IMG/VR virus record: IMGVR_UViG_3300028392_000029 | Coordinates: 1-64,000 of that record | Direction: 5' to 3' (one strand) | DNA length: 64,000 nucleotides | Notes under the pieces: generated by a model | Seen by the model: only the letters and a program-made list of their open reading frames with translations | Told to the model about the DNA's origin: nothing | The model's database searches: none | Made by a program: the position numbers and the translations under genes | Shown: in pieces, positions 1 through 44,982 of the stretch | Layout of the letters: each line of letters opens with the position of its first letter | Numbering within the stretch: the first letter of the stretch is position 1

Positions 1-22
1 AAACAACACATAGGAGCGAAAC

Positions 23-373
23 ATGGGTTATTTTACAGATTGCGATTTCGACAGCACACACGAGATGCTGGACTGTATCAATGAAGTGATCGAGCGCAAC
101 ATCCGCAACAACTTCGTACAGCATTCCGCCTCGGACTTGGGACTAGACATTCGCTGTGGGCGAGTACTGGTTGATGCCGCAGACGAGATTATTGCTGTGC
201 CCAATCACAACATCCGGATGCTGGACTACTACGGTGGGTTCGAGTACATTACCGAAGGCGACGGGCGCCAGACAGTAGGCGACTACACTTTCTTTACCTG
301 TGTGAGCGATCGTGTACAGGATTGCTTCGACCACTTGAACGAAAAAGAGTCGGTTGACGAGTCTGAAGAATAA
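23..373 (+). CDS. hypothetical early protein
   Basis: ORF preceded by CA-rich leader and GGAGCGAA RBS at 13-20. Confidence 0.75.
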   Translation: MGYFTDCDFDSTHEMLDCINEVIERNIRNNFVQHSASDLGLDIRCGRVLVDAADEIIAVPNHNIRMLDYYGGFEYITEGDGRQTVGDYTFFTCVSDRVQDCFDHLNEKESVDESEE

Positions 374-382
374 CTGTATAAT
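354..382 (+). promoter_or_regulatory. sigma70-type early promoter
   Basis: TTGACG-N17-TATAAT, then AACACTTACAC leader and AGGAGCGAA. Confidence 0.85.
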
Positions 383-414
383 TAACACTTACACAAACAC
401 ACTAGGAGCGAAAA

Positions 415-909
415 ATGGGTACACGATCAATGATTGCAATCCAAAATCCCTACAACAAAACAGTTCGCGCAGTCTACTGCCACTGGGACGGGTACTTGGA
501 ACACAACGGCGCTATCTTGCACAAGCATTACAGCAACAGCCCTAAAGTCAACAATCTGATTGCACTAGGCGACTTGTCTAGCCTGCGTCAGGACATTGGT
601 GAGAAGCACGCCTTTAGCCAGTTTGAGATTGACGACCCAGTAGAGCGTGCCGCACACGAAAAGCTCACAGAGACCCAGTGTACATTTTACACACGCGACA
701 GAGGCGAAGACGCTCCGTTCAAAGTGTTCCCTACACTTGCTAAGGCAGCTGACTATTATGACGGTTGCGGTGTAGAATACTTGTATGTGTTCAAATACAA
801 GAAGAGCGACGACTATCAGTCGGGTGGGTGGCACTTTAAGAAGCCCGGCGGACGCTGGAAGAAACTTGCACCAGCTATCGCTCGACTCAAAGCAGAGGAG
901 TGCGCATAA
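415..909 (+). CDS. conserved phage hypothetical protein (MGTRS...YCHWDGY family)
   Basis: Recognisable N-terminal GTRS and YCHWDGY motifs; own promoter and RBS. Confidence 0.8.
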   Translation: MGTRSMIAIQNPYNKTVRAVYCHWDGYLEHNGAILHKHYSNSPKVNNLIALGDLSSLRQDIGEKHAFSQFEIDDPVERAAHEKLTETQCTFYTRDRGEDAPFKVFPTLAKAADYYDGCGVEYLYVFKYKKSDDYQSGGWHFKKPGGRWKKLAPAIARLKAEECA

Positions 910-1124
910 TGACAGGGTACCAATCAAAGAAGGCTATGGCCTATGACAAGTTGGCCAGAGGGGACTTGCATGACGAAGTCCTCAATCAAATCGCAGAGGA
1001 TTTGCAGGGTGGTGACTTGACAGCCATTGAAGAGCTGTTGAAGTTTGTCCCCCGTGAAAACTTACTAGCCTATCTATCAGAGAACACAGTAATTGACATC
1101 AACAACACCGGAGGTAAATGGTAA
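909..1124 (+). CDS. hypothetical protein
   Basis: ATG overlaps upstream TAA (TAATG coupling); GAGGAG upstream. Confidence 0.65.
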   Translation: MTGYQSKKAMAYDKLARGDLHDEVLNQIAEDLQGGDLTAIEELLKFVPRENLLAYLSENTVIDINNTGGKW

Positions 1125-1339
1125 TGAAGAAAGTTATCGTACGCACAGAGCTGATGCAGGAACTTGAAGTGCCGGACTCATGGGAACGCGAAGATGTATT
1201 TGATTTCCTAGCCGAGTACCAATCGTTCCGTACAGCGTTCCAGGGTGTGAGCAACGAAGATCAAACAGCCCGAATCATTGACTTGGGTGTGGTAATTGAA
1301 ACAGTAGAACAACTAGGTGAGGAGTGTTTTGATGAGTAA
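1124..1339 (+). CDS. hypothetical protein
   Basis: GGAGGT RBS; TAATG coupling. Confidence 0.65.
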   Translation: MKKVIVRTELMQELEVPDSWEREDVFDFLAEYQSFRTAFQGVSNEDQTARIIDLGVVIETVEQLGEECFDE

Positions 1340-1511
1340 GATGGCAGAACTGGCATATGATATCGAGCAACTGTATATCGAAGGGTACAGCCCTAAGGCA
1401 ATCGCAGTCCAGCTGGAGTGTCCATTGAGTGTAGTCTACGATTGGCTAGAAGCAACCAATGTGGCAGAAGCGCCACAGGATGAAGAGTACAGCCCCTACA
1501 ACGGCGCTTGA
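1332..1511 (+). CDS. small helix-turn-helix-like protein
   Basis: GYSPKAIAVQLECPLSVVYDWL resembles an HTH; GAGGAG RBS. Confidence 0.55.
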   Translation: MSKMAELAYDIEQLYIEGYSPKAIAVQLECPLSVVYDWLEATNVAEAPQDEEYSPYNGA

Positions 1512-1536
1512 CACTTTGGGCTTTTGATTGTATAAT
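1508..1536 (+). promoter_or_regulatory. sigma70-type early promoter
   Basis: TTGACA-N17-TATAAT. Confidence 0.85.
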
Positions 1537-1558
1537 ACATTTATACAGACAGGAGCAC

Positions 1559-1759
1559 ATGATGATCACAGTAGCAAAGATGACAGACGGTAGGATGGTC
1601 GAAGTCGTTCGGACTGCAGAGACTGTGGGCTTCAGCCCTGACAAAGGTTGGGTGATGGTGTGCTTCGACTTTGAAAAGGTTGATCGCAAGCGTGAGCACT
1701 TCAAGTGGGTGCCGGCCACTACCCGATTTGATTGGGTTAGGGCATACGCTTTTGGTTGA
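1559..1759 (+). CDS. hypothetical protein
   Basis: ATG after AGGAGCAC RBS downstream of promoter 1508. Confidence 0.7.
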   Translation: MMITVAKMTDGRMVEVVRTAETVGFSPDKGWVMVCFDFEKVDRKREHFKWVPATTRFDWVRAYAFG

Positions 1760-1784
1760 CAGGGTGTGCTTTTGGTTGTATAAT
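1756..1784 (+). promoter_or_regulatory. sigma70-type early promoter
   Basis: TTGACA-N17-TATAAT. Confidence 0.85.
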
Positions 1785-1809
1785 AAACACATACAGACAG
1801 GAGCACACC

Positions 1810-1950
1810 ATGAAGATTACAATCAAAGTACCAAAGAAGCACAGAGAACACATCATCCTGTTCTGTGCAGGCACACCCTTCAAGCAGAAGGTTGTTCAAA
1901 GTAAAGTTAAATATAAACGTCAACCTAAACACAAAGGCAAATATGATTGA
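1810..1950 (+). CDS. small basic protein
   Basis: AGGAGCAC RBS; Lys-rich, ends PFKQKVVQSKVKYKRQPKHK. Confidence 0.65.
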   Translation: MKITIKVPKKHREHIILFCAGTPFKQKVVQSKVKYKRQPKHKGKYD

Positions 1951-2185
1951 TATCGAACTGCACGGACTGAATGCACGGCAACATGTCATCGCCGACATAT
2001 TGTGGGCCTACGAAGATGGCAAGGATGCTGACCGCTTCATCCGCGGCTTGCCCACTGCAGAGCTTCGCAACGAAGCACAGGGAATTAAAGATCTCATGCT
2101 GATGGCCGCTGTGGAACAAGCCTACGATGGAATCAGTGATAACCCTGAAGCCAACAAGGTCATTGACAGGATCCGGAATCGATAG
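1943..2185 (+). CDS. hypothetical protein
   Basis: Start MIDIELHG overlaps end of upstream ORF. Confidence 0.65.
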   Translation: MIDIELHGLNARQHVIADILWAYEDGKDADRFIRGLPTAELRNEAQGIKDLMLMAAVEQAYDGISDNPEANKVIDRIRNR

Positions 2186-2191
2186 TATAAT
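2163..2191 (+). promoter_or_regulatory. sigma70-type early promoter
   Basis: TTGACA-N17-TATAAT. Confidence 0.85.
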
Positions 2192-2222
2192 TACTACTTA
2201 AACAACAAAAGGAGCGAACCTT

Positions 2223-2489
2223 ATGAACATTAGCACAATCGAAGCCTATGTAGAGCAGAAGAACAAATGGCGTTCTATCTTCAACCAAAAGCCACTGAGC
2301 CTGTTGAACGCACAGGATCGCCAGGCCATTGCCAACTCAATTGATAGCGAACTTAGCCCAGAGAACCTTACCTGCGATGGTGAACTGCGTGGCGCACAAG
2401 TGCGTGACAAGTTCCGTTATCTTACACGAGCCGCTGAGGAATTGCTCAGCATCGATCCTTCAGTAACCTTTTACGAAATGGGAGTCTAA
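2223..2489 (+). CDS. conserved phage hypothetical protein (LSPENLTCDGE motif)
   Basis: GGAGCGAA RBS at 2211; motif recurrent in phage early proteins. Confidence 0.75.
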   Translation: MNISTIEAYVEQKNKWRSIFNQKPLSLLNAQDRQAIANSIDSELSPENLTCDGELRGAQVRDKFRYLTRAAEELLSIDPSVTFYEMGV

Positions 2490-2490
2490 G

Positions 2491-2634
2491 ATGAAAGTCA
2501 TCTTCAATAGCCTGTTAGCAGGTTGGTTCATTGTGCGTGGTAGCCATCAAACGCCCATCTCGGGTCGCTTTGACAGCAAAGAGGCCGCTTTGGCACACCT
2601 TCGTAAACGCAATCCTTTACACACTGGAGTCTAA
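2491..2634 (+). CDS. 47-aa hypothetical protein (not in ORF track)
   Basis: MKVIFNSLLAGWFIVRG...HTGV*, GGAG RBS, fills the gap between neighbours. Confidence 0.6.
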   Translation: MKVIFNSLLAGWFIVRGSHQTPISGRFDSKEAALAHLRKRNPLHTGV

Positions 2635-2635
2635 T

Positions 2636-3220
2636 ATGCCTAATTGGTGCAACAACTATCTAGAACTAGAACACGAAGATCCTGCTATGATTGAGCGGGC
2701 CAAGAAGGCCTTTGCTGATGGCAGACTCCTAGCAGAGTTCGTGCCCGTGCCAGCAGATCTGCATGTGGTTGCAGGACGGGTTGGTAATGATGAGGATCCA
2801 GAACAGATCAAACTGGAAGAAGATACAGCCCGCAACATTGCCACACACGGCTATGCCACATGGTATGACTACTGCGTCAATGAGTGGGGCACCAAGTGGG
2901 ATGTGGGTGGTGAAGGTGATCAAGCCAGCCAGGATAGTCCTACTGACCTCTGTATGAACTTTGATTCAGCCTGGGCACCACCCATAGCCGCAATGGAGAA
3001 GTTCCAGGACTTGGGCTTCAAGGTCAAGTTGGTGTATTGGGAATCAGGCATGTGCTTCTGTGGTCTCTTTGATGAGAACGGTGATGACTACTTCGACTAC
3101 ACCGATATGAGTGCGGCTGAAGTGGCTGAGCATATCAATCCTGAGATCGACGAGTGCATGTGCATCGTTGAGAACTTGGAAACATGGGAAGAAGACAACC
3201 GTGAAGAGGAGGCCGAATAA
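2636..3220 (+). CDS. DUF1281/YubB ferredoxin-like domain protein
   Basis: MPNWCNN start, WYDYCVNEWGTKWD and FDSAWAPP motifs. Confidence 0.75.
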   Translation: MPNWCNNYLELEHEDPAMIERAKKAFADGRLLAEFVPVPADLHVVAGRVGNDEDPEQIKLEEDTARNIATHGYATWYDYCVNEWGTKWDVGGEGDQASQDSPTDLCMNFDSAWAPPIAAMEKFQDLGFKVKLVYWESGMCFCGLFDENGDDYFDYTDMSAAEVAEHINPEIDECMCIVENLETWEEDNREEEAE

Positions 3221-3342
3221 TGGACTTTTGGACATGGCTTGCTTCCTGCCCAGTGAAGTATGAAGTTGATAGCCTACAGGGCTTTGACGGAGTCAGCGTG
3301 GCATTCTACCCACCCTCTGAAGAAGAGGACGAAGAAGAGTAA
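3220..3342 (+). CDS. 40-aa acidic hypothetical protein (not in ORF track)
   Basis: MDFWTWL...EEEDEEE*, TAATG coupling, GGAGG upstream. Confidence 0.55.
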   Translation: MDFWTWLASCPVKYEVDSLQGFDGVSVAFYPPSEEEDEEE

Positions 3343-3345
3343 TGG

Positions 3346-3374
3346 TTGACTGCCTACCAAAAAGGCAGTATACT
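3346..3374 (+). promoter_or_regulatory. sigma70-type early promoter with palindromic spacer
   Basis: TTGACT-N17-TATACT. Confidence 0.8.
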
Positions 3375-3402
3375 TAACACTTAACAACAACAAGGTACAG
3401 CA

Positions 3403-3534
3403 ATGAAAACCACCCGAGAACTTAACACAGCGCATGAGGCCAAACAGGCCGATCGATTGCGTCCCCAGAAACCAGTCTACGACTTTGCGCCCCTGGAAGC
3501 AGTAATGAGGCAATGGATCAAGGCACATGAGTAA
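3403..3534 (+). CDS. 43-aa hypothetical protein (not in ORF track)
   Basis: MKTTRELN...WIKAHE*, directly downstream of promoter 3346. Confidence 0.55.
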   Translation: MKTTRELNTAHEAKQADRLRPQKPVYDFAPLEAVMRQWIKAHE

Positions 3535-3793
3535 GCTGAACTTATTCGGTAGGCCCTGGGTAGTATTCAATCCAGCAAACAAGGCACACCGACTCCATTA
3601 CCATAACTTCGTTATTACAGGTAGTTGGGGGCAGTGTCCATTTAGGTTTGTTGTAGATGAAGATCATGGTGATTTGGTAACAATGATCCAACGAACTCTT
3701 ATCCATTATTACACTGATAAAGAGTTCGGTACTGTGGTAAAAAAGCCACAAGAAACGGTTCGCCAAAAGCGGAAGAAAACGGTTGACAACTAA
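3527..3793 (+). CDS. hypothetical protein
   Basis: ORF; RPWVVF...WGQCPFRF. Confidence 0.7.
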   Translation: MSKLNLFGRPWVVFNPANKAHRLHYHNFVITGSWGQCPFRFVVDEDHGDLVTMIQRTLIHYYTDKEFGTVVKKPQETVRQKRKKTVDN

Positions 3794-3811
3794 CCGAAAT
3801 AGTTGTATAAT
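3783..3811 (+). promoter_or_regulatory. sigma70-type early promoter with palindromic spacer
   Basis: TTGACA-N17-TATAAT. Confidence 0.85.
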
Positions 3812-3866
3812 ATGAACATGGACAAGAAGTTCATATTTTTTAACACACACAGAAGAGGTATTTAAA

Positions 3867-4232
3867 ATGGCTACAGATAAATTGTTTACAGTGGTTGGCG
3901 TTTCTAAACTTGCAGGCGAGTACAAAGTTCGCTTTGCCAATGATACCATGCGTGTCAAGGTGCTCGAGAAGCACGGTCACGAAGACACACGTTTGGTCCA
4001 GTTGGACTCAGCGATGACCAAGTATGATGCGGTCAAGACCATTGCTACATGGCCTGAGTTTGCTGATGCCAGTGCGCAGTCAGCTATTGCAGAGTACTTG
4101 GATGAAAAGGCTCCTAAGACAGCCGCTCCTAAGGCTAAGACTCCAGCAGTTAAAGAGTTGGCAAAAGCCCTTAAGACTAAGGCACCTGCAAAGACAGCTA
4201 AGGTGCTTGAGGACGAAGACGCTCCTTTCTAA
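3867..4232 (+). CDS. hypothetical protein with Lys/Ala-rich tail (possible DNA-binding)
   Basis: GAGGT RBS; KAPKTAAPKAK-type tail; acidic DEDAPF end. Confidence 0.75.
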   Translation: MATDKLFTVVGVSKLAGEYKVRFANDTMRVKVLEKHGHEDTRLVQLDSAMTKYDAVKTIATWPEFADASAQSAIAEYLDEKAPKTAAPKAKTPAVKELAKALKTKAPAKTAKVLEDEDAPF

Positions 4233-4246
4233 TCAATGGTACCACA

Positions 4247-4435
4247 ATGAGCTTTATCCAGTTTGAAGTCTGGGCTACATTCGACGGACATGAACAGTTC
4301 GTCGAGTGTTTTCCAACCCTAAAAGAAGCAGAAGGGTTTGTAGAAGATGAGAGAGAGTTCTGGGATGAACTTTGGATCGTCAAGGATGAAGATGATTTGG
4401 AACCAGTAGAGATTAAACGAGTTCAGGGCCTATAG
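4247..4435 (+). CDS. small acidic hypothetical protein
   Basis: ORF; last codons overlap the tRNA 5' end. Confidence 0.55.
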   Translation: MSFIQFEVWATFDGHEQFVECFPTLKEAEGFVEDEREFWDELWIVKDEDDLEPVEIKRVQGL

Positions 4436-4502
4436 CTCAGTTGGTTAGAGCAGAGGACTCATAATCCTTTGGTCCCTGGTTCGAGTCCAGGTGGGCCCAC
4501 CA
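4426..4502 (+). tRNA. tRNA-CAU, most likely Ile2 (lysidine type)
   Basis: GGGCCTA/TGGGCCC acceptor stem, AGCTCAGTTGGTTAGAGC D-arm, CT-CAT-AA loop, GGTTCGAGTCC T-arm, encoded CCA; resembles ileX-type more than Met. Confidence 0.92.
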
Positions 4503-4507
4503 CACTA

Positions 4508-4537
4508 GAAAGGTGTTGTAGAAATACAACACCTTTC
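4508..4537 (+). other. perfect 13-bp hairpin (GAAA loop) after the tRNA; also an operator-like palindrome
   Basis: GAAAGGTGTTGTA-GAAA-TACAACACCTTTC. Confidence 0.7.
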
Positions 4538-4540
4538 GTC

Positions 4541-4569
4541 TTGACATCTTTACCAAAAGGCAGTATAAT
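4541..4569 (+). promoter_or_regulatory. sigma70-type early promoter
   Basis: TTGACA-N17-TATAAT. Confidence 0.85.
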
Positions 4570-4597
4570 TAACACATACACACAGCAAGGAGACAGT

Positions 4598-4816
4598 ATG
4601 ATGAAATTTGATGCGATATTTGATCGCAAGCATGGTAGCCTCTATGACAGAGGTGCCGCAGACAGTTACTATGGTCGCCCACGCGATCCCCATTGGTACC
4701 CTGAAGGTACTTACCGTGGCGAGCGTATCCAAGCCACCGACGAGCTAGACATCCGTGAGTACATGGAAGGCTATGACTACAATGAGCGGTATGGCGACAA
4801 AAAGAGTTGGGATTAA
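4598..4816 (+). CDS. conserved phage hypothetical protein (HGxLYDRGxADSYYGR)
   Basis: AAGGAG RBS; recurrent phage motif. Confidence 0.75.
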   Translation: MMKFDAIFDRKHGSLYDRGAADSYYGRPRDPHWYPEGTYRGERIQATDELDIREYMEGYDYNERYGDKKSWD

Positions 4817-4819
4817 CGG

Positions 4820-4848
4820 TTGACAGATTAGTCCAAAAGTCGTATAAT
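4820..4848 (+). promoter_or_regulatory. sigma70-type early promoter
   Basis: TTGACA-N17-TATAAT. Confidence 0.85.
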
Positions 4849-4881
4849 TAGCACATGAACACAAACAACACGGAGCACACA

Positions 4882-5340
4882 ATGGATTACGAAAACATAG
4901 TAGACACACAAAAGGGCATGGCACAGATGGTGGGCAAGACTTTTGTGCAGGTCACTGGCTCCGTTGGTGGCGGTGAGATGATGTTCGTAACCGCACAGGG
5001 TGAACGTTTCATGTTTGCTCACCAGCAAGATTGTTGCGAGTCAGTGGACATCAACGACATTGTGGGTGACCTCCAGGACCTAGTTGGCACTCCTTTGTTG
5101 GTGGCTGAAGAAGTCCGGGGTGCTACTGAGCCAGACGAAGAGCACTACGAATCCTACTCCTATACCTTCTACAAGTTCGCTACCCGCAAGGGATATGTGG
5201 ATGTGCGTTGGTTGGGTGAGAGCAACGGCTACTACTCAGAAGGTGTGGACCTGTTCGTAGAGGGTGTGTCAGGAGCACAAGAAGCCACTGGCACCACCAA
5301 CCTGGGCGAACTGCTTCGTATGCGGTTGACTGGCGACTGA
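4882..5340 (+). CDS. conserved hypothetical protein (HxQDCCE ... SNGYYSE)
   Basis: GGAGCAC RBS; conserved motifs. Confidence 0.75.
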   Translation: MDYENIVDTQKGMAQMVGKTFVQVTGSVGGGEMMFVTAQGERFMFAHQQDCCESVDINDIVGDLQDLVGTPLLVAEEVRGATEPDEEHYESYSYTFYKFATRKGYVDVRWLGESNGYYSEGVDLFVEGVSGAQEATGTTNLGELLRMRLTGD

Positions 5341-5354
5341 TTTGGCAGTATAAT
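5326..5354 (+). promoter_or_regulatory. sigma70-type early promoter
   Basis: TTGACT-N17-TATAAT. Confidence 0.85.
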
Positions 5355-5383
5355 TAACACACTAACACAGCAAGGAGCGAACC

Positions 5384-5578
5384 ATGCAAGTACACTTTAT
5401 CAACTCAGGTCTAGGCACTGATAGCGGCTTCAAAGAAGTCGACGTGCAGAGCTTCAAAATGGACCATGACGATGCACCCTACGCCATCGTCAGTAACCCA
5501 TTCTTTCCTGGTGATAGCCTACGTGCTGAGTACAACTACTTCAACGGATGCCTGCAATGGGTGGTTGACTTGGATTGA
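5384..5578 (+). CDS. hypothetical protein
   Basis: GGAGCGAA RBS at 5374. Confidence 0.7.
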   Translation: MQVHFINSGLGTDSGFKEVDVQSFKMDHDDAPYAIVSNPFFPGDSLRAEYNYFNGCLQWVVDLD

Positions 5579-5593
5579 TTTTGGCAGTATAAT
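5565..5593 (+). promoter_or_regulatory. sigma70-type early promoter
   Basis: TTGACT-N17-TATAAT. Confidence 0.85.
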
Positions 5594-5624
5594 TACTACA
5601 TACAGACACACAAAGGAGCGCAAC

Positions 5625-6008
5625 ATGGAATCATTCAAAAGCTGGGAAGAGATGAGCACTTTGGAACAGTATGCCTGCCAATACTGGGATATGTATAAGG
5701 ATGCCTACGGCGTTCGCCCACGCGGTATCGACACTACTGACTGGACAGAAGCCCAGTTTGAAGCTGAGTTCGTTCAGTTGGGCAAGACCATTGATGCCAA
5801 CTACAAAGAGCAGTTGGAGTCTGAGGCTAAGGCTATCCAGCGTTTCGAAGCACAGGTTGAGAGCTTTATCCAGTCGGGTGCTAAGACACGCGAAACAGCT
5901 ATCCGTTGGTTCCATGAGGCAGAGGGTAGCAATGGGGATGACGAGTACCTGTGCTACTTGTTGGGCTTGCCCTACCGCTATTTTGTGGTTGACGCGGTTG
6001 CAGTTTGA
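5625..6008 (+). CDS. conserved phage hypothetical protein (YWDMYKDAYGVRPR)
   Basis: GGAGCGCA RBS; motif common in T4-like early regions. Confidence 0.75.
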   Translation: MESFKSWEEMSTLEQYACQYWDMYKDAYGVRPRGIDTTDWTEAQFEAEFVQLGKTIDANYKEQLESEAKAIQRFEAQVESFIQSGAKTRETAIRWFHEAEGSNGDDEYLCYLLGLPYRYFVVDAVAV

Positions 6009-6017
6009 CAGTATAAT
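5989..6017 (+). promoter_or_regulatory. sigma70-type early promoter
   Basis: TTGACG-N17-TATAAT. Confidence 0.85.
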
Positions 6018-6050
6018 ATACACATACACAGCAACTAAGGAGCGAAACTT

Positions 6051-6194
6051 ATGTTACAAACAATTTTAAATGCATTCTATATAACTATAGAACTGTGGAT
6101 CTTCCTAGCAATCTTGGGCGCGGCCCTGTTAGTTGAAGAGGGCGTAACAGCCTATAACAAACGTAAGTTGGTTGACAACCCTACGCTTTGGTAA
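6051..6194 (+). CDS. 47-aa single-pass membrane protein (not in ORF track)
   Basis: MLQTILNAFYITIELWIFLAILGAALLV...; GGAGCGAA RBS at 6039. Confidence 0.65.
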   Translation: MLQTILNAFYITIELWIFLAILGAALLVEEGVTAYNKRKLVDNPTLW

Positions 6195-6200
6195 TATAAT
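6172..6200 (+). promoter_or_regulatory. sigma70-type early promoter
   Basis: TTGACA-N17-TATAAT. Confidence 0.85.
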
Positions 6201-6232
6201 AGTAACTTAAACAGCAACAAGGAGCGACCCAA

Positions 6233-6616
6233 ATGGCTAAAGTAAATTACGACAACTTCGCAAGTTTTGACCTTAACGAAGCTTGTGACCACTTTGACTG
6301 TACAGATCAAAAGGCCTGGAAGAAGATCCGCCCTTTCATAGTAGCAGACGGAACAGACTACGAGGCAGTGATGACAGAAGGCTTTGACTTCTACGACATC
6401 AGTGAAGAAGAGTACTCAGCATTTGATGCAGGTGTTAAGTATGCTATGACTAAGATGAATATAGCATTTGAAAAGGCAGGCGTAGAGCTTCAGATATGTG
6501 AAGTGGATTTGGTAGATGCCTCAGGCTTTATGATGGTTCGTTGCGATGACGAGCCAGAAGACTTTGTTAAACGAGCCCTTAAGAAGCCTGTCATGATGGT
6601 TGACAGTTGGGTTTAA
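6233..6616 (+). CDS. acidic hypothetical protein
   Basis: GGAGCGAC RBS. Confidence 0.75.
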   Translation: MAKVNYDNFASFDLNEACDHFDCTDQKAWKKIRPFIVADGTDYEAVMTEGFDFYDISEEEYSAFDAGVKYAMTKMNIAFEKAGVELQICEVDLVDASGFMMVRCDDEPEDFVKRALKKPVMMVDSWV

Positions 6617-6628
6617 TTGCAGTATAAT
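6600..6628 (+). promoter_or_regulatory. sigma70-type early promoter
   Basis: TTGACA-N17-TATAAT. Confidence 0.85.
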
Positions 6629-6662
6629 TAACACTTACACAAACACAATGGAGCGAAACATT

Positions 6663-6983
6663 ATGGTAACAGCACAAGAAATCCAAAAAGGCTTTGTCCT
6701 TGCAGAGAACGCAGGGCAAGCCATGTACCAACAGATAGGCGAGCGTGACGCTTGCGGCTTTGGTTGGGTAGACGTCTACGTGGATCGTACCAACTCAAAG
6801 CAGGCCAAAGAGTTGATTGCCGCAGGCTTCCGCAAAGACTACAAGCCCAAGTGCTTGAGCTTCTGGGATCCAGCAAAGGTTCCTACACAATCAGTATCAG
6901 TTAAAGAAGCGGGTGCGCAGGCTTTGGCTACTTACCTGCAGGGCTTGGGCTTGCGGGCCTATGCAGGAAGCAGGTTAGATTAA
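6663..6983 (+). CDS. conserved phage hypothetical protein (CGFxWV ... QS...KEAGA...SRLD)
   Basis: GGAGCGAA RBS at 6650; conserved motifs. Confidence 0.75.
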   Translation: MVTAQEIQKGFVLAENAGQAMYQQIGERDACGFGWVDVYVDRTNSKQAKELIAAGFRKDYKPKCLSFWDPAKVPTQSVSVKEAGAQALATYLQGLGLRAYAGSRLD

Positions 6984-7165
6984 TGATAGAGGCAATCCTG
7001 GGCTTTGCAGTCATAGCAGGCCTGGGCCTCATGTTCATCGAGTTGTTGGGCATGTTGGCTCTACTGTTCTTTGGCTTGATCATATTCATGGGTCCATTCC
7101 TGTGGATGAAGATACTTTTTGGCGTAGGCGTTGTGGTCTACTTGTTAACCAAGGGCATCAAATGA
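6983..7165 (+). CDS. small membrane protein
   Basis: Almost entirely hydrophobic; TAATG coupling. Confidence 0.6.
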   Translation: MIEAILGFAVIAGLGLMFIELLGMLALLFFGLIIFMGPFLWMKILFGVGVVVYLLTKGIK

Positions 7166-7293
7166 AAACATTCTATGCCCTAGCGGCAGTAGGGGCGAGT
7201 CTAGTCTGTTTAGCCACAGACAGTGAAACAGCCTTGTTCATGGCGGTATTGGCTGGCTTGGCATTAGTCCAAAAGACGTTGACTGGCGAGTAA
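7162..7293 (+). CDS. small membrane protein
   Basis: MKTFYALAAVG..., ATGA overlap with upstream ORF. Confidence 0.55.
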   Translation: MKTFYALAAVGASLVCLATDSETALFMAVLAGLALVQKTLTGE

Positions 7294-7307
7294 ATATCTA
7301 GTATAAT
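7279..7307 (+). promoter_or_regulatory. sigma70-type early promoter
   Basis: TTGACT-N17-TATAAT. Confidence 0.85.
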
Positions 7308-7341
7308 TACTACTTAAACAAACACATAGGAGCGACAGCTT

Positions 7342-8205
7342 ATGAGCAGGATTATTAATGCAATGGATTTGGTATCAACTAAAAGCCTAGAGCAAGAAGC
7401 AGTGAACAAAGTACTTACAGAAACAGATGAGCAGATCATGAAGCGTCTTGCAGATCGCTTTGAGATCCTGGAAGACATGACACGTGCCGTTAAGAAGGGC
7501 GATGTCAAGGCTATGATCGTTACAGGCCCTCCAGGCGTGGGCAAGAGCTTTGGTGTAGAGAAGGTCTTAGCCAAACACGATGTGTTCGCTAACGTTGCGC
7601 AAGACGGCAAGTTGAAGAAGTATCAAGTGGTCAAAGGCGCTATGAGTGCGCTGGGCTTGTACTCAAAGCTGTATGAATACTCAGACAAGAAGAGCATCCT
7701 AGTGTTCGATGACTGTGATAGTGTATTGCTTGATGACCTTAGCCTGAACATCCTGAAGGCAGCATTGGACTCAGGTAAGAAGCGTATGATCCACTGGAAT
7801 ACAGACAGCCGCTTGCTCAAAGATCAAGGTGTGCCCAACTCATTCGAGTTCAAAGGCGGTGCTATCTTTATTACCAACATCAAGTTCGAGCACGTTCGTT
7901 CAAAGAAGCTGAAGGATCACTTGGAAGCTATTGAGTCACGTTGCCACTACTTGGACCTCACGATCGATACAGAGCGTGAGAAGCTACTCCGTATCCGACA
8001 GGTTGTACGTGATTGCGGCATGTTGGACGAGTACGAATTGGACGAGTTTGCCACCAATCAAGTGGTAGACTTTGTAGCCAACAATGCCAAGAAGATGCGT
8101 GAGTTGAGCTTGCGTATGGTCCTGAAGATTGCAGACCTGCGCAGAACATTCCCGGACAAGTGGGAAGCTGTAGCAGAAGTAACATGTATGCGTGGCGCTC
8201 GCTAG
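7342..8205 (+). CDS. AAA+ family P-loop ATPase
   Basis: Walker A GPPGVGKS, Walker B ILVFDDCD, sensor-I FITN, Arg finger AIESR. Confidence 0.85.
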   Translation: MSRIINAMDLVSTKSLEQEAVNKVLTETDEQIMKRLADRFEILEDMTRAVKKGDVKAMIVTGPPGVGKSFGVEKVLAKHDVFANVAQDGKLKKYQVVKGAMSALGLYSKLYEYSDKKSILVFDDCDSVLLDDLSLNILKAALDSGKKRMIHWNTDSRLLKDQGVPNSFEFKGGAIFITNIKFEHVRSKKLKDHLEAIESRCHYLDLTIDTEREKLLRIRQVVRDCGMLDEYELDEFATNQVVDFVANNAKKMRELSLRMVLKIADLRRTFPDKWEAVAEVTCMRGAR

Positions 8206-8366
8206 TGCATACAAGTAAGCGGGCCTAGACCCGTAGCAGTAAGAACATGCCCAACGATTCGCTCCCGGCAAGCATGTTCAACTAAGAAACCAAGCCCGCA
8301 AGGCACAGTTTCTTTGCCCTAGTCCAGTAAGCCCGATTCGCTCCCGGCAAGACTAGGGCTTTTTTT
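8206..8366 (+). ncRNA. putative structured sRNA / 3'UTR RNA with two anti-RBS loops
   Basis: Hairpins GAACATGC/GCATGTTC, AAGAAAC/GTTTCTT and GCCCTAGTC/GACTAGGGC+T7; 18-mer CGATTCGCTCCCGGCAAG at 8255-8272 and 8334-8351. Confidence 0.65.
8316..8366 (+). terminator. intrinsic terminator with an unusually large loop
   Basis: 9-bp GC-rich stem followed by TTTTTTT. Confidence 0.7.
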
Positions 8367-8368
8367 GG

Positions 8369-8397
8369 TTGACAGTTTGGGCTAAGTCTAGTACAAT
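8369..8397 (+). promoter_or_regulatory. sigma70-type early promoter
   Basis: TTGACA-N17-TACAAT. Confidence 0.8.
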
Positions 8398-8423
8398 TGA
8401 CACATACACACACAGGAGCGCAC

Positions 8424-8756
8424 ATGTTACAGACTACAGAACTAGACACTAAGCCCGCAGGGTTCTATGCCTATGCTGCCGCTAGAGATGCCAGCATGCG
8501 TAGCTATGCCGCTAGCACAGGCTACACACTAGCAGAGCGCACTAGGGCACAGCGTACACTGCTAGGCTTAGAGCTAGCATACACGTCTACAGCGCAGTAC
8601 ATCACATACCGTAAGAAGTTCGTAGTAGTTAAGCTAGAGAACGCTCGTGTACGCGACCGTGCAAGTCTTAGGGCACTAGAGGCACAGTATGAGGCGGAAG
8701 GAATCTCAAAGACAGTTACTGCACAAGCAGTCAGCTACAGGATCCCAAAAATTTAA
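8424..8756 (+). CDS. hypothetical protein
   Basis: GGAGCGCA RBS; ATG at 8424. Confidence 0.7.
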   Translation: MLQTTELDTKPAGFYAYAAARDASMRSYAASTGYTLAERTRAQRTLLGLELAYTSTAQYITYRKKFVVVKLENARVRDRASLRALEAQYEAEGISKTVTAQAVSYRIPKI

Positions 8757-8940
8757 TTTCTCGCTGGGGGGTGGGGGGCATATAAACAAAATGACTGTTG
8801 CAAAAATGCAACAGCGCATGCAAAATTCACCCATAGGTGCAAAATCACCAGGCTGAATCTATAAGTACTTGTTTATAATTTTTTACGCGGACGAAATTTT
8901 GACCCCACAGGACCCATTCGGCCCAGCACACAGGTTCAAA

Positions 8941-27515: not shown

Positions 27516-30419
27516 TTATCTTAATCCTGCAATTTTTAGCATAGCTGTTAGTTCAGCATCTTCGTTCATTCCAGGCATGTTCATGCCCTTCATCATTGAT
27601 CCCATATCCGGCATTCCGCCTTGACCTGCGCCTTTCGGTATCTTACTCATTATGCCATTCATCATATCTTTTGGATTCATGGTAGCGCCAGGCATGCTCA
27701 CTGTTTGGTTGGGCATATTTCCAGCCATTTTGCCCATCTTTCCGTGCAACTTCTGGAACATAGCCTGTGGGTTTGAAAAGTCCATCTCGTCTTCGGTATC
27801 GTCATCACCCATAGCCGGCAATTTAAATTTCATACCTTTAGCTTTGGCCATTGCATCATCATAGCTAGCAGGCTTACCATCTATGGTACCTGTACTTGTA
27901 TGATTTTGTGTAACAGTTGCTCCTGGATTATCTTTTTGGAATTGTTGTAGCAATGCTCCTGGATTAGCACCCTGGTGATTTTGCATGAACTGTTGCATTA
28001 GTGCATTAAAGTCTCTAGTATCATCTTGCCCAGCTTCGTCAATTTCGTGTTCATGATGTACGCCAGCTAAATGTGTAATATGATTGATTTCTGGATGTAC
28101 ATCACTGCTTGGATCCATTTTTTCAATCATGTCGATTACATGTTTAACATGCTCGGGCTCTGCCCCTGGAAATGCTCCATCTTTAAAATCTTTTAATACT
28201 TTGATCTTAGTGCGTGTTCCGCCTAGTGTAAAGTTCTTTTCTTGTGGATTCCAAAATCCACTGATTGATTTCAGGATCTCGTGTGTCGGGTCTTCGTGTT
28301 CTTGTTTTTCGAATCCAAAATCATCTGGGCTCATTCCGCACTCTTCAATACAATCGTGTAAGGTCATTTCTTTATGACCAAAATCTAATTTAGTATCTAG
28401 TTTTGCACCTGCTTTCTTAGCATTATGGATTGCTTTGATCATTCCAGACTTAGCCAAGTGTTTAGCTTGGCTGTGTCCAGTGTGGGTAGCACCGCTTTTA
28501 TCCGTAATATTGCCTTTGGCTTTTGTGTAAGGACCGTCGAACGGTGGTTCTTCATCTTGTCCTTCTGCAACCGGTGCCGGTGGAGCATCTGGTGGAGGAG
28601 GAGCACCTGCTGCCGCATCTGGGGCTGGTGGAGGAGGAGCACCTGCTGCCGCATCTGGGGCTGGTGGAGGAGGAGCACCTGCTGCCGCATCTGGGGCTGG
28701 TGCTGGTGCAGTATCTGCACCGCCAACTTGTCCGTCACCGCTGAAATCTAATTGGTTTTCAAGTCCTGGGTCACGCTGTAATACATATTGTTGTATCATT
28801 GCTCGTGCATCTAAATCTGGATCTAGTTCTTTAAACATACTTAAAAATTCTGGATCGTCAATAATGTGCTTGTTAGTTAAACTACCTATAACATCGTCAC
28901 CATTTGTGCCAACTTTTAATTCAGCACCCATGATACCATTTAGGTCATCAATCGCTTGCTTTTGAACTGTTAAGTTATCGCTAAACAAATTATCGCGTTC
29001 TTCTGATTCGTCGTCTTCATTTACTATGCTATCCATGAAGTTTTCAAATGCATTCATAGGATCATAACTTTCGCGCTCCATACGGTCGTCAAATTCTTGA
29101 CGGCGAGCTTCGTCTCGTTCTTCAGCGTGTTTTAACATTGCTTTTGCACGCTCGTCACCGGCTTCTGCTTTCTTTTTAAGTTCTGCTCTTTGATGAGCTT
29201 TTAAATCTCGTGCGTGTGTTGCGGCTACTGAGTTTGGATTGTAACTGTCTTTTAAATTGCCCTCTTTTTCTGCACGGTTCAATATATCGTAACGATCTTT
29301 GAAACCTTTAGTTCCAGGTTTGATATTTGCGGCATCTGCCTTATCACCGTAGCTAGCTTTCTTTAAATGCTTTAATGTTGTCTTAGCTTGATGACTGTGA
29401 GGAGTACCCTCTGTATCGTCTTCACCAAGAATATCTTCAGGATTCAATCCTTTAACTGGAATAGATGTTTCGTCTACTAGTCGAAAAATATATGGAAATG
29501 CTGTTTTTAATTCTTCATTGAATGTGCGAATTGTTAGTCGATCAATCCAGTCACTCATAATGTCTTCTGGAATCATTTGATCTTCACGATCCTCAAATGC
29601 TTCGGCAAATTGTTCGTAGTATGATTTACGAGAAAGACTTGCTACTTCTTTTTTAACCTGTTCAATACGCTCGAATACCTTGGTTGTAATGTCGCCCATT
29701 GCTTCTGCTAATGTTTCATTACGACTAACATAACCTTTGAATTTACGTAACTGAGCTAATTCTTCTGATAAACTTGTAATGTGTTTGCCAATACTGTCGT
29801 ATGGAATTCCGCCGTGTTTCAAATGTTCTGCTAGAGCACGAGCACCACTTAGATGTTTGAAAGGATATTTAAAGCGTTCACCTTGAGCGTTTTCAACGTA
29901 AATTGCTTCGATGTGTTGTGTACGTCCTGCGGCTAAATCTGTATTAACAGGTTGGCTGTGTTTGACTACAAGCCTTGCCTCGCCTAAGTCTTGGTAACTG
30001 ATCTTAGCAGTACCGTACATTTTACTTTCCATCATAGGTTCTTCCTTGGATTTGGTCTGGAAATGATAATCTCTTTTATCTAAATTATTCTTCCCTATAT
30101 TTATCTCATCATAATTTAACAATCTTGATCGAGCAAAATCTCTCAAAGAACGTATAAATTTAAAAGCCTTGGGATGTCTAGAGTCAACTAGATCTCCGCT
30201 TAATTGTACAAACACGCCCTTCTTTTGGCTAAGTGTAATAGTAACTGTGCCTAGTACTTCGCCGTGATCTTTGTATTCAAACTCAAAGAATCTTGCGTTG
30301 GGTATATCTTCTTCGCGACTAAGTATTTTCCCCTCTTCATCACCAAAGGTAACGTCAGAAAATCTAGTACGGATTTTACCGTATAGTTCTTGCGCGATTT
30401 TGTCTAAGTTAATGTCCAT
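27516..30419 (-). CDS. large acidic protein, putative head/core (scaffold-associated) protein
   Basis: About 967 aa; many [ILVM]xE sites; C-terminal MLKIAGL; directly downstream of terminase. Confidence 0.7.
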   Translation of the reverse strand: MDINLDKIAQELYGKIRTRFSDVTFGDEEGKILSREEDIPNARFFEFEYKDHGEVLGTVTITLSQKKGVFVQLSGDLVDSRHPKAFKFIRSLRDFARSRLLNYDEINIGKNNLDKRDYHFQTKSKEEPMMESKMYGTAKISYQDLGEARLVVKHSQPVNTDLAAGRTQHIEAIYVENAQGERFKYPFKHLSGARALAEHLKHGGIPYDSIGKHITSLSEELAQLRKFKGYVSRNETLAEAMGDITTKVFERIEQVKKEVASLSRKSYYEQFAEAFEDREDQMIPEDIMSDWIDRLTIRTFNEELKTAFPYIFRLVDETSIPVKGLNPEDILGEDDTEGTPHSHQAKTTLKHLKKASYGDKADAANIKPGTKGFKDRYDILNRAEKEGNLKDSYNPNSVAATHARDLKAHQRAELKKKAEAGDERAKAMLKHAEERDEARRQEFDDRMERESYDPMNAFENFMDSIVNEDDESEERDNLFSDNLTVQKQAIDDLNGIMGAELKVGTNGDDVIGSLTNKHIIDDPEFLSMFKELDPDLDARAMIQQYVLQRDPGLENQLDFSGDGQVGGADTAPAPAPDAAAGAPPPPAPDAAAGAPPPPAPDAAAGAPPPPDAPPAPVAEGQDEEPPFDGPYTKAKGNITDKSGATHTGHSQAKHLAKSGMIKAIHNAKKAGAKLDTKLDFGHKEMTLHDCIEECGMSPDDFGFEKQEHEDPTHEILKSISGFWNPQEKNFTLGGTRTKIKVLKDFKDGAFPGAEPEHVKHVIDMIEKMDPSSDVHPEINHITHLAGVHHEHEIDEAGQDDTRDFNALMQQFMQNHQGANPGALLQQFQKDNPGATVTQNHTSTGTIDGKPASYDDAMAKAKGMKFKLPAMGDDDTEDEMDFSNPQAMFQKLHGKMGKMAGNMPNQTVSMPGATMNPKDMMNGIMSKIPKGAGQGGMPDMGSMMKGMNMPGMNEDAELTAMLKIAGLR
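28585..28700. repeat. 36-bp tandem repeat encoding APDAAAGAPPPP
   Basis: GCATCTGGGGCTGGTGGAGGAGGAGCACCTGCTGCC, about 3 copies. Confidence 0.85.
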
Positions 30420-30429
30420 ACTATATTTA

Positions 30430-32025
30430 TTAGATATTACTAGAAATAAATATCGGGAGTGGAGCTTCCCAATCTTCATCTAGATGTGAATTTATGCTGA
30501 GAGTTTCAAACACTCTAGGATCCCACTCTGCTAGTACTACACTCATGCGTACAACTAGCAATAACGCAGAAACTAAGTCATCATGCTGTCCTGTTTTTGC
30601 TTTAAAACTGGTGCCTGCCGCAATAAAACTTTTAAGCTCACTGAGTAAAGGACGACTGTGAATTTTCATCTTATCTTCCTCAATTAAGAACTTTACTCTG
30701 GCGCATGCTGATATTTTATTACCAAATGTAGTGTTAAATCCTTTACGGAATTTACGTACATGCCCTTTTCTCACCGGTTCACTTACAAATAATCCGGGGA
30801 AGTTTTCTTCTCCTAAATCCTTAATCACTACTAGAGCCGCTTCGCCCACAGTGTTGTTTTCACAACTCCAGTAGATACTGTTAGGGTATTCTTGTCCAAT
30901 TTCGTCTTGAATATAGCGCAATAAATCTCTAAATATTTTGACTTGATCTTGTATAATTGTTAAGTTGTGTTGCCATTCTGCTACCTGTATCATGCTGGGT
31001 AATTCAAACACTTCTATGGCAGCATAGTCACCACCTGTGCCTAGGCTAGGATCTAGGGCCGCGGCATAGAGTAATCCGGGTTGAGGTTTTTTATACCAGC
31101 GCACTTGCCCCATACGGAATGCTGGTTCTTTACCCACAAGTTCTGCAAGTTTAATACTGTTAATTAGTGTTTCGTCAAATACTAAAAACTCGCAACCGTA
31201 CTCACGACGGAAACGTTCTTCACCAATACGACCCATCTCAGTTCGCTTCCATTCTTCATCACGATCCGGATGTTCGTGCCATTCAGCACGGAATCCGTGG
31301 AATCCGTTGCGTCCTATACCTTCTTGATTTTCGTTGCCGAACTCATCAAAAAGATCTTTGCTTTCTTTCCAAATAATAGCAAACGTATCTTCGTCACTAT
31401 TAGGAGTTGAAGTGATAATTGCTCGTCCACCAGTTGCTAGTGTTGGTGATATTGAAGTCCAAAATTCTTCAGCAATGTTAGGTTGTACGAAAGCAAACTC
31501 ATCGCAATATAGTAAGGATATGGACATACCACGACCGGTGTTACCAGTAGTAGTAGCTGAAACAATTCTTGATCCGTTCTCAAATTCAATACTCCCTTTG
31601 TTATAGTTAACCACACCTGCACGTATGTAGTCTGGGCATAGTTCGTATCCATAGCGAATACGTTGCATGATTTCTTGTGAGCCTGTATATTTGTGCGCGG
31701 CCACTAGGATAGTTTGATCCGGATGAAACATGGCATACCACAACAAGTATGCTGATGCACAAGTTGTTTTACCACTTTGTCGTGGCAACATGTTTATGTT
31801 GAATCGATAATCGTGATAAGAATTTAATAACCCTACTTGATAGTCATACGGCTGAAACAGCATCTTGCCTTTAACAGGATGCTGAATATAAAAGAAGGTT
31901 TTAGCAAAGTGCAGATACCCTGTAGTAGGATCTGAGCAGGCTAATAAGTGCTGAACTTGTTCTTCAGTAAATGATTCTTTGGTGTGCGCTTTTTTGGTTA
32001 AGACGCCGTCTAGTGATTTTGCCAT
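30430..32025 (-). CDS. terL: terminase large subunit (gp17-like)
   Basis: PRQSGKT, LYCDEFAF, ITSTPN, ALDPS, HDDLV motifs. Confidence 0.93.
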   Translation of the reverse strand: MAKSLDGVLTKKAHTKESFTEEQVQHLLACSDPTTGYLHFAKTFFYIQHPVKGKMLFQPYDYQVGLLNSYHDYRFNINMLPRQSGKTTCASAYLLWYAMFHPDQTILVAAHKYTGSQEIMQRIRYGYELCPDYIRAGVVNYNKGSIEFENGSRIVSATTTGNTGRGMSISLLYCDEFAFVQPNIAEEFWTSISPTLATGGRAIITSTPNSDEDTFAIIWKESKDLFDEFGNENQEGIGRNGFHGFRAEWHEHPDRDEEWKRTEMGRIGEERFRREYGCEFLVFDETLINSIKLAELVGKEPAFRMGQVRWYKKPQPGLLYAAALDPSLGTGGDYAAIEVFELPSMIQVAEWQHNLTIIQDQVKIFRDLLRYIQDEIGQEYPNSIYWSCENNTVGEAALVVIKDLGEENFPGLFVSEPVRKGHVRKFRKGFNTTFGNKISACARVKFLIEEDKMKIHSRPLLSELKSFIAAGTSFKAKTGQHDDLVSALLLVVRMSVVLAEWDPRVFETLSINSHLDEDWEAPLPIFISSNI

Positions 32026-44551: not shown

Positions 44552-44982
44552 AAGAACAGATTGTATGTAGCGGAGCATTGCTATACGCTAAATCAACACG
44601 ACGTTTTTTATTGTTACAGAAAGCACATGGTAAACACGCTGGCACATGGGGCTTAGTAGGTGGTACTACTATCAGCGGTGAAACTCCTTGGCAGGGATTA
44701 CAGCGTGAAATCACTGAAGAAATAGGAGCCATACCTCCTATTATAAAAACAATCCCATTAGAAACATTTGTCAGCAACGACAACGTGTTTAACTTTCACA
44801 CATATCTCTGTGTGATTGAAGATGAATTTATTCCTGTACTAAGCGACGAGCATAGTGCGTGGGCATGGGCTGTAATAGACCATGCACCAAAACCCTTGCA
44901 CCAAGGCCTGAGGAATAGTTTTTCAAACAAGACCATTCGTACCAAGCTACAAACGGTCTTTGATTTGATCGCTTTGATTTAA
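44533..44982 (+). CDS. NUDIX hydrolase
   Basis: Nudix box GG..ISGETPWQGLQREITEEIG. Confidence 0.85.
   Translation: MENRTIKEQIVCSGALLYAKSTRRFLLLQKAHGKHAGTWGLVGGTTISGETPWQGLQREITEEIGAIPPIIKTIPLETFVSNDNVFNFHTYLCVIEDEFIPVLSDEHSAWAWAVIDHAPKPLHQGLRNSFSNKTIRTKLQTVFDLIALI

Follow-up and report, generated by a model that had tools for sequence, protein, structure and literature searches.

The first 64,000 nucleotides of the 223-kb uncultured viral contig IMGVR_UViG_3300028392_000029, hereafter the window, encode a large tail sheath, a DnaB-like helicase, and other myovirus genes. Positions 1-8400 form a plus-strand early region with 17 perfect or near-perfect TTGACA-17-TATAAT promoters, each followed by a CA-rich leader of about 22 nt, a ribosome-binding site (RBS) of the form GGAGC[G/A]NA, 2-5 nt of spacer, and ATG. 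The last but one gene of this region encodes an AAA+ ATPase of the T4 NrdC.10 type that matches phrog_1250, with its best cultured hit in PA5oct at 47% identity. The phage is not a T4-type phage in the strict sense, which qualifies the reference to T4-like systems in the first-pass annotation. The predicted structure of the ATPase is a generic AAA+ fold resembling NorQ/CbbQ, Cdc6, and RFC in a PDB search (TM about 0.5), with no sign of RNA binding. The gap after this gene is a 3' UTR and terminator that folds into four successive hairpins, whose features are collected in the table below.

Table. Features of the early region and of the candidate RNA (window coordinates)
Position	Strand	Feature	Sequence or detail
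13-20, 405-412, 2211-2218, 5374-5381, 6039-6046, 6650-6657	+	Early RBS tag	GGAGCGAA
6221-6228	+	Near variant of the tag, RBS	GGAGCGAC
5615-5622	+	Near variant of the tag, RBS	GGAGCGCA
1552-1559, 1800-1807, 4872-4879	+	Further variant of the tag	GGAGCACA
7279-7307	+	Sigma-70-type promoter of the ATPase gene, presumed source of the transcript that ends in the RNA	TTGACT-17-TATAAT, 11 of 12 consensus positions matched
7329-7336	+	RBS tag of the ATPase gene	GGAGCGAC, 7 of 8 nt complementary to the loops
7342-8205	+	AAA+ ATPase gene, stop codon at 8203-8205	T4 NrdC.10-like, phrog_1250
8206-8366	+	Whole candidate RNA	From the ATPase stop codon to the U7 of the terminator
8220-8233	+	Small 5' hairpin	CGGG/CCCG, not conserved in sequence in relatives
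8243-8279	+	Hairpin A, 8-bp stem plus inner C8255-G8267 / G8256-C8266 helix	GAACATGC (8243-8250) pairs with GCATGTTC (8272-8279)
8255-8272, 8334-8351		Repeated 18-mer	CGATTCGCTCCCGGCAAG
8257-8265	+	Apical loop A	AUUCGCUCC, 8258-8265 being the reverse complement of GGAGCGAA
8284-8314	+	Middle hairpin with inner GCC/GGC helix, in only a subset of relatives	AAGAAAC (8284-8290) pairs with GTTTCTT (8308-8314)
8316-8359	+	Hairpin B, doubling as the terminator hairpin, 9-bp G+C-rich stem (6 G-C pairs) plus inner CCG/CGG helix (8333-8335 with 8345-8347)	GCCCTAGTC (8316-8324) pairs with GACTAGGGC (8351-8359)
8336-8344	+	Apical loop B	AUUCGCUCC, 8337-8344 being the reverse complement of GGAGCGAA
8360-8366	+	U7 tract of the intrinsic terminator	
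8369-8422	+	Next early cassette, for gene 8424-8756	TTGACA-17-TACAAT, CA-rich leader, and RBS GGAGCGCA (at 8415)
53685-53702	-	Possible extra target specific to this phage, codons 37-42 of a 523-aa gene	Complementary over 17 nt to loop A plus the start of its 3' stem

The first-pass annotation described this gap as a candidate sRNA with two loops antisense to the early-gene RBS, acting as a class-specific translational off-switch, and all of its sequence statements were confirmed. The two stems are unrelated, but each presents the same 9-nt apical loop, A-UUCGCUCC, and shuffles expect only 0.02 matches to the 18-mer at up to three mismatches. The tag GGAGCGAA was found nine times in the window against 0.74 expected; six of these are plus-strand RBSs, two are the loops read on the other strand, and one is a coding site at 53688 inside a late gene. 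The complementarity at this last site is not conserved in homologues of 75% identity or less, and it is retained only as a lineage-specific curiosity. In total, GGAGCG occurs in the RBS of 10 early genes, while GGAGCACA, a variant not listed in the first-pass annotation, serves three more. By contrast, none of the 41 minus-strand ORFs of at least 120 aa carries GGAGCG.

Hairpin B and its U tract constitute a bona fide terminator-like structure, which a simple terminator scan missed because the loop exceeds 8 nt. No promoter-like site was found on the plus strand between 7490 and 8369. The single-sequence fold z-score is only -1.8, and the support for a structured RNA therefore comes from comparison with relatives and not from folding energy. 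An exact search for the 17-mer in IMG/VR returned 35 loci, of which about 30 are homologous elements behind the same ATPase gene with the same loops but entirely different stems, while about four look like chance or coding matches. To avoid selection on the loop itself, relatives were retrieved through the ATPase protein, and all 54 non-redundant loci with an ATPase at least about 71% identical carry UCGCUCC hairpins directly after the stop codon (105 loops; two in 49 loci, one in four, and three in one). A T run of at least 5 follows the last loop in 50 of the 54.

Among these relatives, 86 distinct hairpins with 83 different 5' stems of 6-17 bp display UCGCUCC in the loop, against a mode of 5 bp when the flanks are shuffled. 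In an alignment of 18 distinct type-A hairpins, 20 loop columns are invariant and all eight stem pairs show compensatory changes, with 89.6% of cells paired against 22-34% when the partner is slid. RNAalifold independently recovered hairpins A and B together with a short inner helix (CG/CG or CCG/CGG, with the variants GUG/CAC, GCG/CGC, and CUG/CAG) that closes the 9-nt apical loop; 15 of 22 predicted pairs are compensatory. The anti-RBS 8-mer is therefore exactly the apical loop, which explains part of the wider invariance of the loop region; the remainder is only partly explained by the inner helix, and something else, such as a protein, may also bind there. The most reduced version (locus L095 of the retrieved set) has two 7-nt loops consisting of UCGCUCC alone. 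A covariance model of hairpin A scored it at 57 bits and found only the two known loops in the window. Ordinary terminator and stabilizer hairpins, with a loop complementarity that is coincidental or left over from a local duplication, would fit the terminator-like form of hairpin B and the modest z-score, but this explanation is contradicted by loops that stay invariant while the stems turn over completely, and by the different loop motif that matches a different RBS in the sister lineage described below.

The strand of the RNA was examined from isolated non-Watson-Crick pairs inside the stems across two lineages, which are G.U 19 times and A.C once; the count was restricted to isolated internal mismatches, as one with over-extended helices was flawed (66 against 71). 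Together with the position of the T run and the plus-strand orientation of all neighboring genes and promoters, this shows that the RNA is the plus strand and displays the complement of the RBS, not a copy of it. A minus-strand RNA displaying GGAGCGAA in its loops as a decoy or sponge for a protein or for 30S subunits, in the manner of CsrB/RsmZ, is thus very unlikely, although hairpins fold on either strand and CsrB-type sponges appear to display RBS-like motifs in their loops; no minus-strand promoter lies nearby. Similarly, a DNA-level signal, with GGAGCGAA/TTCGCTCC as a protein-binding site read in either orientation, is suggested only by the occurrence of the 8-mer in both orientations. 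It is contradicted by the fixed Shine-Dalgarno distance of the motif from the ATG and its GGAG or GAGG content in every lineage, and 83 covarying stems have no purpose for a duplex-DNA site.

The energetics are consistent with pairing between loop and tag. The median loop/leader duplex energy is -12 kcal/mol for early genes and -7 kcal/mol for other genes (p = 6e-4), while opening loops A and B costs 0.1 and 1.1 kcal/mol, respectively. Net pairing is -9 to -12 kcal/mol for GGAGCGAA leaders and -5.6 to -8 kcal/mol for GGAGCACA leaders, so that the GGAGCACA cassettes, about a quarter of the early cassettes in the window, are predicted to be weaker targets. A canonical 16S 3' tail, assumed because the host is unknown, reaches only -7.7 kcal/mol on the same leader, as the CGAA extension does not pair with it. 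Complementarity is essentially limited to 7-8 nt, and pairing beyond 8 nt is rare.

The decisive comparison came from more distant ATPase relatives. In two loci with ATPases of 63-69% identity (L103 and L115), the early RBS is GAGGGC, and the post-ATPase RNA has two hairpins with GCCCUC in their loops. The L115 ATPase used as a query gave 45 more loci of this lineage, whose post-ATPase RNAs carry one to five GCCCUC motifs (two to four in 31 of 37 loci; one has none), mostly in hairpin loops. There are 78 distinct hairpins, the commonest being GGAY-GUGCCCUC-GUCC, with a loop complementary to GAGGGCAC. Lineage 1 (54 loci) has 105 UCGCUCC and no GCCCUC loops, and its 378 cassette genes include 182 with GGAGCGA, 296 with GGAGC, none with GAGGGC, and two with AGGGC. 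Lineage 2 (37 loci) has no UCGCUCC and 101 GCCCUC motifs, and its 272 cassette genes include none with GGAGCGA, nine with GGAGC, 159 with GAGGGC, and 202 with AGGGC. The two-by-two comparison of loop motif and RBS motif has no discordant cell, although roughly half of the early cassettes carry only GGAGC and not the full 7-mer.

A third lineage, with ATPase identity of 58-60%, shows looser (CUCC)n or CUUGCUCC loops: it has one hairpin whose loop is a (CUCC/CUCU)n tract or CUUGCUCCUC, matching the RBSs GGAGAGAG and GAGGAGCAAG and often the RBS of the ATPase itself. A few loci have single-stranded UUGCUCCUU or UUACUCCU matching AAGGAGCAA or AGGAGUAA. The enrichment there is weaker, as 25 of 247 genes have a 7-mer complement against eight with shuffled tracts. 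In loci L106-L111, where the RBS is AGAGGAA, no matching hairpin was found in the limited sequence examined. Loop and tag have therefore changed together, which is the result that the first-pass annotation had named as the test of its idea. However, the main tag switch is essentially one evolutionary event, plus the looser third lineage, and not many independent events.

Autoregulation of the ATPase only, with the loops pairing in cis or in trans with the RBS of its own mRNA and other early genes sharing the tag merely through a common leader, is plausible but not favored. The element sits directly after the ATPase gene in three lineages whose ATPases are down to 58% identical, and in lineage 3, the best complement is often the ATPase's own RBS, for example, GAGGAGCAAG against CUUGCUCCUC and GGAGAGAGAG against CUCUCUCC. 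However, the ATPase RBS is not a markedly better match than those of other early genes (63% against 48% carry GGAGCGA in lineage 1, and 58% against 58% carry GAGGGC in lineage 2), and in the window, it matches at 7 of 8 positions while six other genes match at 8 of 8. Furthermore, in loci L098-L105, an ORF separates the ATPase from the hairpin, which persists further downstream, and pairing in trans with every tagged mRNA is hard to avoid on physical grounds.

The best reading, held at a probability of about 0.6 and supported by comparative evidence without expression data or a cultured relative, is a trans-acting anti-RBS RNA that shuts off translation of the tagged early mRNAs. That the element is a structured plus-strand RNA is close to certain, action of its loops by pairing with the tagged early RBSs is likely, and class-wide repression is somewhat more likely than not. 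In this model, the ATPase transcript ends at the terminator formed by hairpin B, and its 3' part, either as a processed fragment or as part of the mRNA, would present two open loops to the extended Shine-Dalgarno tag GGAGCGA(A) in unstructured leaders, the CGAA extension serving as an address and not as a stronger ribosome-binding site. The RNA would accumulate as early transcription proceeds, occupy the tagged RBSs, block 30S binding, and give delayed negative feedback on the early class, including the ATPase mRNA itself, with exposure of the mRNAs to decay as a likely consequence, whereas middle and late mRNAs, which lack the tag, would be spared. Stoichiometry is a concern, since one RNA with two loops would have to titrate mRNAs from about 15 or more consensus promoters. 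That the RNA accumulates, pairs in vivo, and represses translation, and with what timing, is inferred, and nothing in the sequence fixes the direction of the effect. The RNA could instead protect or buffer tagged mRNAs, for example, by masking GGAG from a RegB-like nuclease, since T4 RegB cuts GGAG in early RBSs (PMC3014915). This outcome cannot be excluded from sequence alone but is considered improbable, as no RegB or RegA relative was found among the 10 early ORFs scanned against Pfam or the 10 scanned against PHROGs, and occupation of a Shine-Dalgarno sequence is generally expected to block initiation.

No Rfam family describes the element: a covariance-model scan of the whole window at gathering threshold found only tRNA-Met, and a scan of 8100-8450 at E up to 10 gave only two chance-level hits. 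Megablast and blastn of the region against GenBank phages gave no match, and PA5oct has only a 43-nt gap after its ATPase and cannot serve as a model. The 17-mer gave 114 single hits scattered over all phyla in 596 Gb of bacterial and archaeal genomes, against roughly 70 expected by chance, with no host counterpart and no sign of rRNA or tRNA mimicry. Literature searches found no description of such a system, and a 2025 review of phage sRNAs lists nothing similar.

The closest mechanism is the c4 antisense RNA of phages P1 and P7 (Rfam C4 family), which is made from the same transcription unit as its target and whose loops pair around an RBS and block translation, with sequence variants giving specificity between phages (PMC12197685). 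There is no covariance-model match to c4, which controls one operon (icd/ant) in temperate phages to maintain immunity, whereas here the complement is a tag shared by most genes of a temporal class in large lytic-type myoviruses and the RNA is embedded in a 3' UTR and terminator. The closest in design are the C-rich-loop sRNAs of Gram-positive bacteria, such as S. aureus RNAIII and RsaE/RoxS, in which several hairpins appear to display a short UCCC loop against the generic GGGA/GGAG core. No homology was detected, and the loop here extends over a non-16S-complementary extension (CGAA, or GC in lineage 2) that is private to one gene class and changes with it between lineages. T4 RegB and RegA, which are proteins, are the closest functional analogs for class-wide early shut-off at the Shine-Dalgarno region; RegB cuts GGAG mainly in early RBSs, including its own, with the consensus GG*AGRAYARAA (PMC3014915), which the tag does not fit because it has C at position 5. 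The position immediately after a stop codon and ending at the gene's own terminator is that which 3'-UTR-derived sRNAs of the CpxQ/SroC type appear to have, but the seed lies in apical loops, one of them inside the terminator hairpin, instead of in a single-stranded 5' seed. The element is not a member of any of these families, and what it adds is a class-wide address tag that co-evolves with the regulator.

A more speculative extension, doubtful at present, is that each lineage marks its early mRNAs with a private extension of the Shine-Dalgarno sequence (GGAGCGAA, GAGGGCA, GGAGAGAG, or GAGGAGCAAG) and encodes a multi-loop anti-tag RNA that reads this address, as a natural orthogonal translation-control channel. 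Acting in trans, such an RNA would also silence the early genes of a superinfecting phage that shares the tag, giving kin-specific exclusion comparable to P1/P7 heteroimmunity, which would explain why tags and loops diversify together.

The element is real, widespread, and strongly selected, and it defines an uncurated RNA motif in more than 100 uncultured viral contigs that could be added to RNA family databases and used to annotate early regions in metagenomic phage genomes. It also supplies at least two clear natural, mutually orthogonal tag/anti-tag pairs, plus looser ones in a third lineage, which are 7-9 nt long, have simple hairpin scaffolds, and have been validated by evolution, making them of direct interest for synthetic translational control. 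Temporal shut-off of early genes in large lytic phages is known from protein factors such as T4 RegB, RegA, and Alc, while an RNA that addresses an entire gene class through a dedicated Shine-Dalgarno extension has not been described in the literature searched and would add a new layer to phage developmental control.

The middle hairpin, which lies between the two anti-RBS hairpins, has its own semi-conserved loop, which is ACGCCAACAAGGCAA in many relatives and GCCCGCAAGGC in the window (alignment columns 40-80). It is present in only part of lineage 1. In a third lineage of ATPase relatives (loci L307-L358), the hairpin after the ATPase is characterized by a long polypyrimidine loop, (CUCC/CUCU)n or CUUGCUCCUC, the best complement of which is often the ATPase's own RBS; for instance, it was located in L318 and L326. 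The more distant members of this lineage (L337-L349) keep only a UUCG-tetraloop terminator.

In addition to the loops themselves, a 17-nt stretch identical to loop A plus the start of its 3' stem was identified inside a gene on the minus strand, so the mRNA of this 523-aa late gene (codons 37-42, LAGSEP) is perfectly complementary to the RNA over 17 nt, against a chance expectation of about 1e-5. However, the match is present only in relatives of at least 94% identity and is absent at 75% and below. Two further features were noted among the minus-strand ORFs of the window: a perfect 36-bp tandem repeat of 3.2 copies that lies inside the 987-aa virion-protein ORF, and an ORF of 2225 aa in the structural region.

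Coordinates of additional features in the window and in third-lineage loci
Feature	Coordinates	Strand
Array of sigma-70 promoters	1-8400	+
tRNA-Met gene	4426-4502	
Middle hairpin	8284-8314	
Gene preceding the conserved non-coding module	8424-8756	
Conserved non-coding module	8757-8900	+
Hairpin GGTGCAAAATCACC of the module	8836-8849	
36-bp tandem repeat	28589-28702	
987-aa virion-protein ORF	27516-30479	-
2225-aa ORF	44979-51656	-
523-aa late gene	52239-53810	-
17-nt stretch identical to loop A plus the start of its 3' stem	53685-53702	
Hairpin after the ATPase, L318	L318:2086-2200	
Hairpin after the ATPase, L326	L326:3906-4020	

The beginning of the window contains an unusually dense array of 17 consensus or near-consensus sigma-70 promoters, each heading a small gene. 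Nearly all of these genes have unknown function, one is a DUF7448 protein, and a tRNA-Met gene lies among them. A conserved non-coding module, having no match in Rfam, comprises three elements, namely, a G-rich box ending in CATATAAA, a hairpin TGTTGCA/TGCAACA, and a hairpin GGTGCAAAATCACC. The same three elements follow the anti-RBS RNA in most lineage-1 relatives, and the module could be a promoter of another class with its leader, another RNA, or an origin.
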